A stretch of DNA of 63,583 bases, the filler included, from Ministeria vibrans ATCC 50519 (Eukaryota; Protista; Filasterea), in NCBI GenBank assembly GCA_943704425.1. It is 7 parts of 7 records of this genome, joined end to end, with 100 filler letters (N's around TTAATTAATTAA, not from the genome) between each part and the next. Parts side by side here need not be neighbours in the genome. Positions count along the whole stretch, not along the records: positions 53,633 to 60,250 come from CALSCP010001799.1; 6 more parts are not named here. One strand, written 5' to 3'. Below the pieces are notes generated by a model. That model was given only the letters and a program-made list of their open reading frames with translations. It did not search any database and was not told the DNA's origin. The position numbers and the translations under genes are program-made. Positions 53,633 to 60,250 of this stretch are shown here, piece by piece; positions within the stretch are counted from its first letter, which is position 1, and each line of letters opens with the position of its first letter.

Positions 53633-55925
53633 GTGCCCACTTGGAGATGTGCTCGTACTGTCGTGCTGCGGTGATGGTGTCGCGCATGACGGAAAGATCA
53701 AAGACGATGACATAGAGAGATTCGGAGCCCATGAAGAGTGCAGGGAGAGAGTCGTACATAGATTCGCCTACACCGAGACCAGAAAGTAAGTTCAACATAA
53801 ATTCAAAAAGTTAGTCAATTTTTCTAACCGGCAAAGTCGAAGGTGTCCATGTCAACAAACCCTGTACGCGGCGCGTTGGTCTCAAAAAGACTTCGCACAT
53901 ACTCCATGGCCTCTTTCTTGTTCATGCACGTGGTCGCGTCAGTAGTGGCGTCACTGATGGGGCTGGAGCTGGCGGGCGACAAGGAAGAACTTGAAAGCAC
54001 TAGATCGGAAATAATATTGAAACCGTCCTCCACCGATTGCCGCATTGAAAAAGCTGATGGCCACAGTATAGGTTGATCCATGTCAAACTGTTCTTCCTCT
54101 TCGACATCTGTCTCTTCTTCGTACTCTTCTCTCTCTTCTTCCTCCTCTTCTTCTTCTTCTTCCATCTCTCCGCTCATCGCTCCTGCCAAGCGAGATTCGT
54201 CCAATGGCACCGTCTCAAACTTGCCCTTTCCCTTATCAAACGTCATTCGCAATTTGTGCATGCGAGTCGCCAATGAGCGGTCCTCCTCAGCCGGAAGCTC
54301 TTCGCCTCGCAGTGCGGCCACAAGAGCAGTCTTGCCTGCTCTTGTTGCGCCCAGGAACAGCACTTTGATCGAGCGTGGTATCACCGAGCCGCGAGCCATC
54401 GCAGAAGCAAATGCGTTCAGGAAGGCTGGATTCCTGAGAGACGAGACGGTTCAGAGACAGCTGTTTAATACACACACATTATGGAGCGAGTTGAATTAGT
54501 ACGGAAGATTAAGGTCACTAATGCACCACGTGCACTTAGCACAATCATGGCCGCAGACAGCACTAAAGCTAGCTCCATCCTTAGATACCTCAATCATGCA
54601 AACCGGTCTGCAAGGGGAGAAACTTAGGCTGTTTTATCACTCTTTGATCATTTTGATACCCAGATGTCTTGAGGGTCTTCAGGGGTGTTCCACGCACGCG
54701 ACCCCACTCAAACACAGAGTTACAGTCACTACTGAAAATAGTCTTGCCATCACGAGAGACACACACCCGACGGACATAGCTGAAAAGGATACAATCATGT
54801 CAAATCACATCAGACACACTGAGTTATTTATTACTCTTTATGCCCCGCAAAGGTACGCACACACTTTTCCGTTTGTATATTCCACTCTTTCGCTGTGTTG
54901 TCGTTTGAGCAACTGATCACAAGTGTCTCGTCAGGCGAGAAGACTGCTGATATGACGCCCCTAAACCATATCGAGTGGTCAATTGTCATTTCACACAAAG
55001 AGAATATATTCTCGTTCTCACAATGAATGGCCAGTCAGTGTTTTTGTACACTCTCCATTTTGAGACGACCATAGTTTAACAGTTTTATCTGCTGAAGCAG
55101 TCAGAATGGTCGTTCCATCGAGTGAGAATCGGACAGAGTAAACAGTCCTGAAGGCAAATTTTCAGTACATCATTTGCCTTCTGTTTGACTTACCCTTCGT
55201 GCCCCACAAATGTCATTTGGCACTCTTTCGCCTCAATGTCCCACAATTTTACAGTCTTGTCATCTGAGCAGCTCAGAATTTTCTTTCCATCCGATGAGAA
55301 TTGGACATCCCAGACAGCACTAACACAAGCAGAATTTAGTCACTAAAATGAGCCACACAGAATCGTGTACCCTTTGTGTCCCTCAAATGTAACTTTGCAC
55401 TGTCTTCTGCCAATGTCCCACAGTTTCACGCTGTGGTCCGCTGAACCACTCAGAGCCTTTTTGCCACAAGGAGAGAAAACGCCACAGATTACATGTCTAA
55501 GAACACAAAACGTCAAAGGAGCAAAACTCAGTTGCACAGCTTATACACTCATAATAGTGATGTTACCCTTTGTGACGTCCTTTCAGAGTGTGTAGTACTT
55601 TTTGACTCTCCCACTCCCGCACAAGAAGACCATAATCGCTGACTGTGGTACTCAGCACAAGCCCATCGCGACACGCCAAATCCAAATCCAACGGAACTGG
55701 TGAATGAGCTGGCGTCGAATCTAGGACTGATGATCCTCCCCTGATAATCCACTGTTCGTCGGGAGTCAGGAGGAACCCAGCTACACCCTCGCGCTGTCCC
55801 AGGGGAGACCTAACGGGAGTTTTAAGCTGAAAAGCGCCGTTGCTGTTTTCGCCGAAAACAACAATGGAATCGCTGTCTGGCTCCGTGTACACAATCAGAG
55901 AATCACTGATTCGAGTCAAAGGCAT
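53633..55925 (-). CDS. Roco-type protein: N-terminal WD40 propeller followed by ROC GTPase domain; truncated before expected COR
   Basis: WD40 exons 55496-55371, 55319-55194, 55147-55022, 54960-54835 (126 nt each), 54779-54660, 54607-54503; then AMARGSVIPRSIKVLFLGATRAGKTALVAALRG, DFAGESMY, LYVIVFDLS. Confidence 0.8.
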
Positions 55926-56483
55926 TCTACGCAGAGAGCACAAGAAGATTGGGGTCAGGAAAGTAAAAGGGTGTGCCACAAATTGAGGGTGAAGAGACAA
56001 AACAACCCTCAAACATGAAACGGAAATGAGACCAGATTTCGTCTCACACCACCACGAAACAGTCCCACAACACAAAAAATTACTTCATAATAGTGCCTGT
56101 ACGACGAGTGTGTCGTTCAGATAGTGGACATAAGGAAGGAAAGGACGTTTTGGTTCGTTTTTTTTTTTCTCGCTTCTCACCAAAAATACAACGGGTCTTA
56201 GATCAGTCAAATGGTGAAAATAGTCTTGGTAGCTAATAGTGGCACGATGAGTATAACCAGCGTAAGAAAAAATAAAGACCGAAGACGTGAAAAAATTACT
56301 CAAAAGTAATTGAGCCTGAATTAAACGAATAAATAGAAACGAAAGAATACTTTCCAGTATGGCATACACCGTGATGCGATCTCTTTCTTCATTGACGCTT
56401 AAAGTGTCTTCGCCCTTGTCAATTGCATCATCCATCATAAAAAAAAAAAAAAAAACAAACAAACCACCGTCTCATATATATTT

Positions 56484-59368
56484 TTACAACATTCTCCCGC
56501 GCCGAAAGTCCCTCTCGCCCCCACCGCTGGCACCCTCGGGATTCTGCGTCGCACGCGCCACCTCGGCATTGTCAAGCGAATGAAACTCGTTGAAGTCGAG
56601 ACGCACCGCCAACAGACGCATATTGGGGTCGGCATGCGTCGTCAGCTGTACCAAGAAACGCGACACGAGCGACCGGTAGTTGTGCTGGATCACATCAATT
56701 TGCTGCAACTGCGCACGCACCGTCTCCTTCATGAGCACACTCTCGCGCTCGGCGGCCGCATCACTTTCAGCCTGCGTCACCCCCCATGCACCCGCCAGAG
56801 TGCGCTCATACGCTCTCCCTTGCTGCGCCCGTTGCTCACTCACCACTTCAAGGCCTGCCGAAAACAGAGCATCCTACGAAAACAATATAAAAAAAACAGT
56901 TCAGGAATACCCCTCCCCCTCATGTTTCATATAAGTTTTTTCCGTCGCACCTGGCGTTCGCGAAAGGCGGAGATAAAGGAGAAGATGGAACGGACGTTGG
57001 CGTGCATGTCGCGCGAGGACTCACCGAGAAGCGCCCGTTCGCACACGGACTCGAGGAAGCGCGTGTGTGCCGCAATGGCTTCGTCAAGGTCGCGTGCAGC
57101 AGCAATTTGACGGAGGAGGGAGGCAAAGGCGCACTCGAGGACCTCACACACAATGTAGTATTGGAAGTTGTTGATAAAGTGAAGCATTTCGGCGACGATG
57201 ATGCTGCAGTGGTTGAGGGCCGGGCGCATGGAGGGCAGTGCGCGACCAATGACACGATGGTGGGAGGCAAGGGACTTCCAGACAGACGAGAGGCAGTATT
57301 CCATACGCTTAAGACGCCAGAGAAAGTTGAAGATGCGCAGGTATTGCGTCATGGCGGGTGGGGAGAGGATGGCATTGATGGGCGCGTCAACGTGGTAGTC
57401 CAAGGTGAACACATCCCAGCCCTGATCGAGCGGGGAGGACTCGAGCAGACGTACGTCAAGACGCGCAATGATGTCGGGTTCTTCGTACTGCGCCATGGTG
57501 GCGCGTACGGCACCTTCGAGGGCCGCCGTGAGATTGTGCAGGTAGAGATTTTCGGCGGGTTTCGACAGGTCGTCGTTGAGCACGTCCATGAGATGCTGGT
57601 GGAAGTCCCCCTGGCCAATGAGCAGGTAGCGACGCAGCGCACCCAGATGCTCGACCAGTTTGAAGCGATTGCGTAGGATGTCCAGGAGACGAGTGGAGGT
57701 GGCACGGTAGGCTGTTTCAATGGCGGCCAAGAGTGCCGTGGACGAATGTGAAGTAGTAGAAGCAGTCGAAGTGCCTGTGACCACTTGACTTGACTGTAGT
57801 TCGGTGTTGAGGGCAATCTCGTCGTCGAGCAGGTCTTCGGTGCGATCAAAGTAGTTGCCAGTGCTCTCGCGGATGGTGGCCGCGTCAAAAATGTCGGCAC
57901 GGTCGTTACAGACGTGACGGATGAAATCGATCGATTTGCCAATGAGAAGAATCTTACTGGCAAGCTTACGACTCACAAAGGAGGGAATCATCTCTTCGCG
58001 CAGCGTGTACTTGGTCGTCCACCAATCATCGACAGAGACGTCCGCAGCACACGCGACGAAGAACTCGGCAAAGCGGTCGTCCAGCTCACCGGCAAACACC
58101 CAGCGACGCACCATGGCGTAGATGGGACGCGCCACTTGCTTAAGAATGTGGACGACAGCCGCACGTACGGCGGGATCGCCGTGCTTGGCGTACGCGTGCA
58201 CTGCGGTTGCTAGTGCGCCGCCGCGTGTGTTGCCCACCTGGTCAACAAGTGCGGCAAGCACACGCAGACGCAACAGGGGCTGTTGTGTCCACACAATAAG
58301 GCGACGTAGAGTCAGTTGAGCTGCAGGTGGAGCGGGTGTATCACCGTCGTGTGCGTGAGCTTGCTCTGCTGCAGGCGCTGTGTTGACGTGTCCTTCGAGG
58401 ACCGCCACGAGACGGTAGTATTCGCCAAGCTCGTGTTGGAGGGCGGCACAAAACGCCTGGCCTACCAGACCCAGTGGCTCGTCGCCGCCGTTGTCGTCGA
58501 TAAAGGTACTGATGCGACGATAGAGCCAGCCCAGTTCGGCAAGTCGCCCGACTAGATCACGGACGGGGGGCGCGACAGAGACGGTGCGGACCACGACAAA
58601 TGCATCGACAGCCTCGTCGAAACGCACATAGCGACCGTCGATGCCTTGCATGACAAAGACGAGGTCGCGCAAGAGCAGCTGCTCGGAAATCTCTTGGAGA
58701 CTGTTCGTTCCATTTGGGGTACCTTGGGCGCGGTACGAGGCGAGGAGCGCACGTCGGCGTGCGAGTTCGGGAGCACTGGCTGTCAAGTGCGGACCCTGAC
58801 CGCCAATGGAGAGTGCCGAGACGAGTGTTGGTCCAGCACACACGGCGGCCGGGGGCGGGGCAAGTGCTGCTGTGTGCTGGAGTCGGTTGGAGGCGGACGA
58901 GGGCTGTGCTGCGGGGCTGGAGGGCTCACACTGACGACGGTTGCGGACGGTTGACGGTTGACGGGGCGAATTTCGCAGAGCCACCATCAACGCAAGCGGC
59001 CCATGCTTGTTGCGCGGCAGCGGGTAGGCTGACAGCCGACGAAAGAGCTCGGCAAAGCGCAAGGCGTCGTCGTCACGACCCGACTTGAGAGAGAAGAGAG
59101 AAGAGAGAGAGAGAGAGAGGCATAAAAGAAAAAAGAAAAATCAAAATTCGCGCGCGAACGAAAAGAAGACATTTGGAGAGGTCGAAGGGACACCGCTCTC
59201 ACATACCTGTTCTAATCTTCGCTTGGCACACTCAACGGCATGGAGGGCGTCCTGCGTTTCGCTCTCGGGGATGGCACTTCCAAGAATTCGCATTGCCAAC
59301 GACAGCGTCTGCGCGGACGGCGAGCCGAGGCGCGCGCACAGTGCGCCGACAGTGTCCTCGATGCGCAT
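56484..59368 (-). CDS. TUBGCP3: Gamma-tubulin complex component 3
   Basis: LLRDLVFVMQGIDG, LAELGWL, GLVGQAFCAALQHELGEYYRL, LTLRRL.VW, ALRRYLLIGQGDF, GWDVFTLDY, YLRIFNFLWR.KRME, RLDFNEF. Confidence 0.95.
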
Positions 59369-59924
59369 GGTGGTACGGTGCAGACGAATAGTAACTGAAT
59401 GAATGATCAGAATGAGACTTCAGACTTAATGAGTTCACTGAGTTGAATACGAATCAATAGAGTTTGTGGAATGTTGCTGTCTTTGAATGAAGGTGCAATG
59501 GTGCATTTATGCCATGCGATTGTAATGATGATGTGAGTGTGATGTTTGTTGCCTTGTCACAGGCTCACAGCCTTAATACATGATTAATAAGAAAGAAGTC
59601 AAGAAGAAGAAGAAGACATTTCCAAAAATCAATCAAAATTCACTTCCAAGATTTGAAATATGAGATTTCAGAATAAAAACTCAAAACTAAACTTTTTTTC
59701 TACAAAACGCATTTAGAGGCGCCAGGCTACTCCCTTAGGTCTGGGCACTACTTGATGACTGTCGTTAGTACTGTGAATGAGTGGAGGCAAGTCAGGCAAC
59801 CTTAATTTTCCAATGGGACAGAGAGAAACGTTTTAGTTTAATGATTAAGGTTGTAATCGATTACTTTTCACTTCAATGAGTTCAATCTTCATTTCTTTTT
59901 CTCTTCCTCCTTCAGTTGTGTTTC

Positions 59925-60146
59925 ATGTCTGATAGAAAGGCACAGGCGCACTACTTCCCGCCCGACTGGGACCCGTCCAAGGGCGGCCTCAACAAGTACC
60001 ATGGCCAGCATCACTTGCGCGAGCGCGCGCGAAAACTCGACCAGGGCATCCTTATTATCCGCTTTGAGCTGCCGTACAACATCTGGTGCGGTGGCTGTGA
60101 ACGTCACCTGGGCGTGGGTGTGCGTTTCAATGCCGAAAAGAAGAAG
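59925..60146 (+). CDS. YJU2B: Splicing factor YJU2B/CCDC130 (Saf4), first exon
   Basis: YFPPDWDP..GGLN...LRERARKL.QGILIIRFELPYNIWCGGC..H...GVRFNAEKKK. Confidence 0.92.
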
Positions 60147-60190
60147 GTACGAGTGTTATTGGGGGATGTTGTGCATCGTCGTTTTGACGA

Positions 60191-60250
<60 letters not shown>

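Follow-up and report, generated by a model that had tools for sequence, protein, structure and literature searches.

A WD40-ROC gene of Ministeria vibrans with one propeller blade per exon, and relatives in which ROC-COR is followed by a predicted caspase-like domain

Introduction

In bacteria, the LRR-AP-GTPase(ROC)-COR proteins, which place leucine-rich repeats (LRRs) together with a ROC GTPase and a COR domain, carry variable C-terminal effectors that include a caspase, and they occur as several paralogs per genome (Kaur et al. 2021, PMC8195603). In the LRR-ROCO genes of brown algae (Ectocarpus), each LRR is encoded by a symmetric phase-2 exon of 72 bp (PMC11378527, PMC3341825), and these exons have been reported as strongly shuffled (PMC3341825, PMC11378527). 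Some ROCO proteins of the stramenopile-alveolate-rhizarian (SAR) group carry a C-terminal peptidase, IPR009003, and in published domain lists of Roco proteins WD40 repeats are mentioned as occurring N-terminal to ROC (PMC11378527); a combination of caspase-like and WD40 domains has been described in the metacaspase-WD40 proteins of cyanobacteria (PMC2853523). Here we describe a WD40-ROC gene located in a stretch of 63,583 nucleotides from Ministeria vibrans ATCC 50519 (assembly GCA_943704425.1), referred to in its entirety as the window, and the family of loci to which this gene belongs. Within the window the analysis was confined to the piece at 53633-60250 (CALSCP010001799.1), and all coordinates are window coordinates. 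We consider it probable (roughly 0.7) that the window holds the 5' part of a large Roco-family gene, encoding a WD40 propeller and a ROC domain with a disordered insert, and continuing, by homology to ten related loci, into COR and a caspase-like protease.

The bacterial LRR-AP-GTPase(ROC)-COR proteins are the closest described system, followed by the brown-algal LRR-ROCO genes. Similar to the bacterial proteins, the family described here has the order sensor repeats, ROC, COR and effector, and its caspase-like domain is nearest to bacterial types; dissimilar from them, it is encoded by eukaryotic genes with spliceosomal introns, its sensor consists of WD40 repeats and not LRRs, and the same effector is found wherever one is seen. 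With the brown-algal genes the family shares one symmetric phase-2 exon per N-terminal repeat and its multi-copy nature; however, the exon here is a 126-nt WD40 blade, and the order of the blades is kept across paralogs instead of varying between them. The peptidase of the SAR proteins we take to have a trypsin-like fold, not a caspase-like one.

Shared with the wider Roco family (LRRK2, LRRK1, DAPK1 and the Chlorobium tepidum Roco) are a P-loop GTPase, a G4 motif of the THxD type found in LRRK2, and a COR domain directly after the GTPase, and the fold matches of ROC-COR from the relatives are exclusive to Roco proteins. The differences are that a WD40 propeller takes the place of LRRs as the N-terminal sensor, that a caspase-like output is found at the C-terminus and no kinase, that a disordered insert of 100-170 residues lies between strands beta2 and beta3 of ROC, and that sequence similarity stays below Pfam thresholds. 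The Apaf-1 apoptosome and the STAND NTPase-WD40 proteins also combine a WD40 sensor and a nucleotide switch with caspase activation by induced proximity, which would be the presumed mode of activation here; unlike Apaf-1, the present family has a Ras-like GTPase and COR instead of an AP-ATPase or NACHT, an N-terminal WD40 region, and the protease in the same polypeptide. The fungal HET-E/NWD proteins resemble it in their WD40 repeats of about 42 residues, in the presumed use of these repeats for recognition, and in forming a multi-copy family; the Ministeria gene is nevertheless not one of them, as NACHT is absent and its repeats, at 29-51% identity, display no concerted evolution within the gene. 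The fungal repeats are not known to be split by introns. Neither a WD40 gene in which each exon encodes one blade nor a eukaryotic protein with the WD40-ROC-COR-caspase architecture turned up in a non-exhaustive search of the literature.

A WD40-ROC gene with one blade per exon

The gene is encoded on the minus strand, begins with an ATG at 55925, and comprises nine exons before it is cut by the edge of the piece at 53633. The exon model was built from a three-frame translation of the minus strand together with the location of splice sites, and the reading frame was verified on the concatenated exons; the start codon is backed by the homologous N-terminus of exon 1 in a related locus, L004. 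The features of the gene are as follows.

55567-55925, minus strand: exon 1, 359 nt; start codon and degenerate N-terminal propeller blades
55371-55496, minus strand: exon 2, 126 nt; a single WD40 blade with strands a to d; both ends in phase 2; PF00400 29.9 bits
55194-55319, minus strand: exon 3, 126 nt; one WD40 blade; PF00400 39.7 bits
55022-55147, minus strand: exon 4, 126 nt; one WD40 blade; PF00400 37.7 bits
54835-54960, minus strand: exon 5, 126 nt; one WD40 blade; PF00400 31.9 bits
54660-54779, minus strand: exon 6, 120 nt; degenerate blade, position 2 from the end; no Pfam match
54503-54607, minus strand: exon 7, 105 nt; short last blade, strands a-c only
53829-54433, minus strand: exon 8, 605 nt; first half of the ROC GTPase (G1 to G3) and a low-complexity insert
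53899-54225, minus strand: ROC insert, between beta2 and beta3; variable, acidic, Ser/Pro-rich
53633-53767, minus strand: exon 9, cut; switch II region of ROC, running past the edge of the piece

Introns 1 to 7 measure 70, 51, 46, 61, 55, 52 and 69 nt and are all GT-AG introns in phase 2, while intron 8 (61 nt) is in phase 1; the probability that seven introns share one phase by chance is about (1/3)^6 = 0.0014. Five of the seven phase-2 introns are located one or two residues past a GH dipeptide, and the blade exons start one base before the first codon after GH-x and end two bases into the codon after the next GH-x. By the standard strand assignment (PMC3419727), one exon holds strands a to d; it thus corresponds to a structural blade, whereas the unit of the sequence repeat is d-a-b-c. 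In the last exon there are strands a to c only, as would be expected if an N-terminal strand closes the propeller ring, and a strand-d motif is present ahead of the first blade in the related loci L004 and L005.

Profile and sequence searches were run exon by exon, and the two halves of ROC were therefore scored separately and never as a whole domain. Exons 2 to 5 each exceeded the PF00400 gathering score (29.9-39.7 bits against 27). Exon 1 gave no Pfam match and a weak match to the hidden Markov model (HMM) of the family blades at residues 96-116; its N-terminus is homologous to exon 1 of L004 and L005, where a clear blade is present. Exon 6 has no WD dipeptide, and it groups with the position-2 blades of all paralogs with support of 100/99; exon 7 has short homologous last exons in L004 (99 nt) and L002 (108 nt), and exon 2 is collinear with L002:65-190. 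The propeller of the window gene would comprise about seven or eight blades, six of them being one exon each. A DNA-level repeat search of the WD40 region in the window found nothing meaningful linking exons or introns to one another.

Downstream of the blades, exon 8 encodes the G1 P-loop GATRAGKT (54351-54328), a switch-I-like DRSLATRM (54259-54282) and the G3 motif DTFDFA(G) (53847-53830), with about 160 residues between GATRAGKT and DFAG. In an alignment of eight loci the insert differs in length and in sequence in every copy, and its flanks alone are conserved. The insert is acidic in the window and Thr/Ser/Pro-rich in others (window and L002-L008 compared). Exon 9 shares 70-77% identity with the beginning of the ROC-COR exon in L002, L004, L005 and L006; counted from the alignment, its identity to the open reading frame (ORF) P0006, its closest relative there, is about 84%. 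The Pfam Roc model, a recurrent match in the family, stayed below its cutoff in the window (E 0.034), and searches of PDB sequences with the G1 half, alone or as a profile, returned only non-specific small-GTPase and low-complexity matches. An exact look-up of the 191-residue ORF of exon 8 gave no match. No contig continuing the gene beyond 53633 was found by exact look-up, protein search or two scans of metagenome contigs, and these scans yielded no confirmed relative.

These data bear out, in all details, the structural part of a preliminary description of this DNA, which had proposed a WD40-ROC gene cut by short GT-AG introns in phase 2, mostly after GH-x, with one symmetric exon per repeat. 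Exons 2-5 match PF00400, the GATRAGKT and DFAG motifs are in place, the exon model confirms four exons of 126 nt followed by exons of 120 and 105 nt, and the introns of 46-70 nt have the placement after GH in five of seven cases. The accompanying caveat, that the repeats are diverged from each other, holds as well (29-51% blade identity and no DNA-level repeat between exons).

The gene belongs to a family with ROC and COR

In a word-based protein search, exon 8 retrieved three ORF fragments, and nine ORFs were found to be homologous to the next exon; the contigs of these ORFs yielded the loci L001 to L011, with no named protein among the relatives. L001 is the window gene itself from another sample (99.1% identity, 11 substitutions, same exons and frame). 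Seven distinct members (L001, L004, L005, L007, L008, L009 and L010) come from the single metagenome sample SAMN09406036, indicating that this is a family and not a single-copy gene; three more (L002, L006 and L011) come from sample SAMN09406010, and L003 comes from Logan run SRR23272272. The window gene and its relatives L002, L004, L005, L006 and L007 all have blade exons of 126 nt in phase 2-2, flanked by AG/GT borders: five such exons are of exactly this length in L002 and six in L004, and runs of exons of 120-132 nt are found in L005, L006 and L007.

By sequence alone the case for a Roco protein is weak, and it is the predicted fold that decides. In all relatives the next exon contains the G4 motif VGTH[LIV]D at the position where LRRK2 has VGTHLD; the window is cut before G4. 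With the family profile of the second half of ROC, the ROC domain of LRRK2 accounted for six of the seven best PDB sequence matches, at E 0.1-1.1. Pfam Roc remained below its cutoff and the Pfam COR models had no match; the assignment of COR therefore rests on fold. An AlphaFold model was made of P0007, the 546-residue ORF of L004, from an alignment of nine sequences, with a predicted local distance difference test score (pLDDT) of 78. A Foldseek search with this model gave 21 matches at E <= 0.001, all of them to Roco proteins, including LRRK1 (8fac, 2e-7), the C. tepidum Roc-COR structure 3dpu, LRRK2 and an isolated COR domain. Furthermore, VIA-align placed the C. tepidum COR domain 3dpt_B first, with Z 13.0 and 274 of 299 residues aligned, and the Roc-COR tandem at Z 12.9, both well above the rows for unrelated structures, and the nearest ESM Atlas clusters all carry Roc, COR-A and COR-B. 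Judging from the model of P0007, the family appears to have the defining ROC-COR tandem, and since COR is present in the relatives, the name Roco, as first suggested for the window gene, holds for the family.

A caspase-like domain follows ROC-COR in the relatives

In seven of the eight loci in which this region can be seen (L004, L005, L006, L007, L008, L009 and L011), another ORF is found on the same strand about 15-200 nt after the ROC-COR exon. In L004-L008 a phase-1 GT-AG intron of about 50-70 nt, located at the same place in each, joins the COR exon to this caspase-like exon, and the JGI ORF P0015 reads through the COR-caspase intron in frame. PF00656 matched 8 of the 14 caspase-like members, with a best E of 1.5e-7. 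The NCBIfam model NF047832, 'caspase, EACC1-associated type', was matched over nearly its whole length at 1e-8 to 4e-10; these matches reached 31.8-39.5 bits against a cutoff of 140, and the domain is therefore related to the NF047832 family without being a member of it. A PADLOC search gave no match.

The motifs HLxGHG, with the histidine, and DFCxSG, with the cysteine, are invariant across the caspase-like members. The best PDB sequence match of the family profile was Arabidopsis metacaspase-4, in which the catalytic HYSGHG and DSCHSG align to these two motifs. A structural model of the domain (pLDDT 84.5, predicted template modelling score 0.88) gave 294 matches at E <= 0.001 and matched caspase-9, the yeast metacaspase Yca1, MALT1 and GSU0716 at about 1e-7; its look-alikes in the ESM Atlas are bacterial Peptidase_C14 clusters. 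Taken together, motifs and modelled fold indicate that the relatives carry a caspase-like domain of the Peptidase_C14 type, clan CD, with its His/Cys dyad intact. The architecture of the family is thus a WD40 propeller, ROC, COR and a caspase-like protease, with the exception of L010, and the C-terminal caspase-like domain is new with respect to the preliminary description.

In L010, a Cullin-like segment (L010:298-1185; PF00888, E 6e-6) lies in the same open frame as the ROC P-loop region and directly upstream of it, in the place of the blades, and no caspase ORF was found in the 350 nt left downstream. This segment may represent a domain swap, a read-through of a neighbouring gene, or a scaffold error.

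Signs of diversification in the WD40 region

Among 14 collinear blade pairs, the most variable alignment columns were column 20 (0.9) and then columns 2, 4 and 22 (0.8). Following the sequence rule of Wu et al. (PMC3419727), columns 2, 4 and 20 correspond to R1-2, R1 and D-1, the top-face hotspot positions with which WD40 proteins bind their partners, so that these three are found among the four most variable of 41 columns; for three pre-defined columns to fall in the top four of 41 by chance has a probability of about 4e-4. The ratio of nonsynonymous to synonymous divergence (dN/dS) was 0.49 (0.33-0.78) for the blades versus 0.28 (0.22-0.35) for ROC-COR. Positive selection in the strict sense (dN/dS > 1) was considered and rejected, as the blade values are raised yet below 1.

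Judged by silent sites, the WD40 segments are much younger than the ROC, COR and caspase parts of the gene. Between L004 and L005, 58 of 77 four-fold silent sites are identical in the blades versus 114 of 273 in ROC-COR and caspase (Fisher p = 1.7e-7), and in blades 7, 6 and 4, 47 of 52 such sites are identical while amino-acid identity is just 71-78%. The Nei-Gojobori (NG86) dS is 0.26 for these three blades versus 1.1-1.4 for the 3' domains, and three of the four intervening introns are 67-80% identical between the two loci, compared to 44% for shuffled sequence. A second mosaic is seen in L003 (L003:1-1474, aligned with window 55017-53633), where some 620 nt (55017 to about 54400) covering three blade exons with their introns and the beginning of exon 8 show only 2 differences from the window gene; further on, identity falls progressively to 78%, and the insert is longer and unrelated. 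L003 represents a paralog that has been recombined or converted, or else an assembly chimera.

Together, the variability of the hotspots, the mosaic of silent sites and the mosaic structure of L003 suggest exchange or conversion of entire WD40 segments among the copies, followed by change at the binding face. The signs of an exchange of whole segments, and not of single exons, go beyond what had been described for this DNA before. It should be noted that the short exons may themselves constrain silent sites. A further caveat is the GC content at third codon positions (GC3), which is 0.47 in the blades versus 0.62-0.70 elsewhere. In the window gene and L004, GC3 is lower in the WD40 exons (0.47-0.49) than in the ROC, COR and caspase exons (0.57-0.70); in the neighbouring genes it is 0.66 for the gamma-tubulin complex component (GCP) gene of the window and 0.66 for a CAP-Gly gene. 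The low GC3 of the WD40 exons could reflect a different history or constraints on short exons.

Architecture and possible function

Several observations weigh against reading the window gene as the 5' part of a WD40-ROC-COR-caspase gene. The gene is cut in exon 9, and its COR and caspase-like domains are predicted from paralogs. The Pfam Roc model stays below threshold on every piece, with a best E of 0.00029 in the family, and the G1 half by itself matches small GTPases without preference. Exons 1, 6 and 7 are degenerate, and therefore the propeller of the window copy may be impaired. The loci are metagenome contigs that are likely, but not certain, to be paralogs in one genome; L010, with its Cullin-like segment and no caspase ORF, shows that the architecture is not universal; and the dN/dS of the blades is raised and does not exceed 1.

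The ROC-COR tandem is known to act as a switch through GTP-dependent dimerisation, induced proximity activates proteases of the caspase type, and the top faces of WD40 propellers bind ligands. In the mechanism that these properties would allow, a ligand bound to the top face of the propeller would shift the GTP-dependent monomer/dimer switch of ROC-COR, dimerisation or oligomerisation would bring the caspase-like domains together and activate them, and their activation would lead to proteolytic signalling or a cell-death output. Such a protein would be a one-polypeptide analogue of the apoptosome or of a bacterial ROC-COR-effector conflict protein. The paralogs differ most at the top-face hotspots and appear to exchange whole WD40 segments by recombination or gene conversion with the order of the blades kept; more speculatively, the disordered and variable stretch inserted into ROC may act as a loop for regulation or cleavage. 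On this basis we tentatively suggest, as a possibility that falls well short of an even chance, that these genes form a protist innate-immunity or cell-death receptor family, with a WD40 sensor, a Roco switch and a built-in caspase-like executioner, in which diversity arises not from exons changing their order but by exchange of whole WD40 cassettes, followed by rapid change at the hotspots; the uniform phase-2 grid of exons could then help cassette exchange between paralogs. If true, the family would correspond in eukaryotes to the ROC-COR-caspase conflict proteins of bacteria and would be a GTPase-based analogue of the apoptosome.

Roco proteins with WD40 and many other domains have roles in cytoskeletal and developmental signalling, and the genes described here might instead encode an ordinary signalling Roco, like the Roco proteins of Dictyostelium, with a constant scaffold propeller, a processing or regulatory protease, and no role in immunity or cell death. 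Such a function would agree with dN/dS values that are all below 1, indicating purifying selection overall, and with the housekeeping genes that neighbour the gene in the window. It fits poorly, however, with seven diverged copies in one sample, with variability that peaks at ligand-binding hotspot positions, and with a nearest named caspase family that is of the bacterial conflict-system type, bacterial proteins with ROC-COR and a C-terminal caspase being described as conflict systems (PMC8195603). We therefore regard an ordinary signalling role as rather unlikely.

The architecture matters beyond this locus. Roco proteins are medically relevant (LRRK2, DAPK1), and the ligands of their repeat domains and the coupling of ROC-COR to output are unclear; the activation of caspases by induced proximity is well understood, and a direct connection of ROC-COR with a caspase-like protease would make the Roco switch simple to read out. 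In addition, the family would connect the Roco proteins of eukaryotes with the ROC-COR-effector conflict systems of bacteria and with the logic of the apoptosome. Furthermore, the mosaic divergence at silent sites points to movement of sensor modules among paralogs, which can be tested as a way for a unicellular eukaryote to diversify its receptors.

The blade-per-exon grid is old, and ongoing exon shuffling is not supported

The preliminary description had put forward, as its headline inference, a WD40-sensor Roco family diversified by exon shuffling or alternative splicing, and had taken the symmetry of the exons as what allows any repeat to be skipped, duplicated or swapped. The symmetry is real: in the window and five paralogs, all blade exons are in phase 2-2 with a length that is a multiple of 3. 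Because the blade-per-exon layout is common to all paralogs with visible blades, the grid is an old trait of the family. Whether it is still in motion was addressed with a maximum-likelihood tree of 32 blade exons from seven loci, in which resolution is limited by the 41 alignment columns and many forks are left open. Mapped on this tree, the position of a blade in the propeller changes 7 times (minimum 5; mean of shuffled labels 21.1; 0 of 200 shuffles as low), whereas the gene to which it belongs changes 25 times. Blades therefore group by position and not by gene, a pattern that is coarse but clear, and the expected conflict between exon trees and gene trees was not found, with the exception of position 6 in the window gene and L002: these blades join the position-5 blades of their own genes (89/94) and not position 6 of L004 and L005, which points to one old replacement or duplication of a blade in the window/L002 lineage.

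A model in which single WD40 exons are still being shuffled, duplicated, skipped or swapped to diversify a receptor family, as proposed for the brown-algal LRR-ROCO genes, would be consistent with the symmetric blade exons of the window and five paralogs, with the multi-copy nature of the family, with the one inferred replacement at position 6, with two neighbouring blades of L002 that are 68% identical to each other, and with exon lengths that differ slightly between copies (120-132 nt). It is hard to reconcile with the grouping of blades by position and with a collinear order that is kept even though the GTPase exon is just 37-47% identical between copies. The blades of the window gene and L002, for example, correspond one to one at 51-73% identity. 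In addition, there is no DNA-level similarity between exons or introns within the window gene, the second-sample copy L001 has an identical structure at 99.1% identity, and blade number appears constant where it can be counted. Position clustering, collinearity and the lack of DNA repeats thus indicate that the family is not at present diversifying through single exons that change order or were recently duplicated; the shuffling headline is mostly not borne out, and this account of the family is unlikely, slightly more so than ordinary signalling.

The grid would most simply be the trace of how the propeller arose, with a blade exon and its intron duplicated in tandem, the phase-2 introns being predicted to sit in the loop between strand d of one blade and strand a of the next. 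Repeated gain of introns at AG|G in the codons after GH is a weaker alternative. As a clean case of exons that match propeller blades, the gene bears on how propellers are built and diversified.

Finally, it is improbable, and the weakest of these explanations, that the window holds a truncated or decaying copy on its way to becoming a pseudogene, with its exon pattern a relic: the loss of the WD40 signature in exons 1, 6 and 7, the missing WD dipeptide of exon 6, and the lack of a continuation of exon 9 among the nine ROC-COR ORFs recovered are outweighed by nine exons that are all open with canonical splice sites, by a copy in another sample that keeps every exon and the frame through 11 substitutions, by intact G1 and G3 motifs, and by the same layout in the closest paralog, L002.

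Neighbouring genes

The piece at 53633-60250 is short, gene-dense and eukaryotic, with introns of 46-120 nt and three visible genes. Upstream of the WD40-ROC gene on the same strand, at about 59368-56484, lies the GCP gene (GCP_N 1.4e-84, GCP_C 1.9e-71), which has two short introns, at about 59209-59090 and about 56926-56870, the first of which holds a (GA)n tract. The start of a Saf4/Yju2 (CWC16-type) splicing-factor gene is found on the plus strand at 59925-60148 (3.3e-23); its N-terminus is followed by a probable donor site and then by a long (CT)n microsatellite that extends to the end of the piece (60250). At L004, an ORF with a CAP-Gly domain (L004:5217-5537, E 6e-22) lies about 150 nt past the stop of the caspase-like exon; the neighbourhood of L004 is thus that of a very compact genome and unlike the neighbourhood of the window gene, so that the copies are dispersed. 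The contigs of the relatives likewise end in (GA)n or (CT)n tracts.

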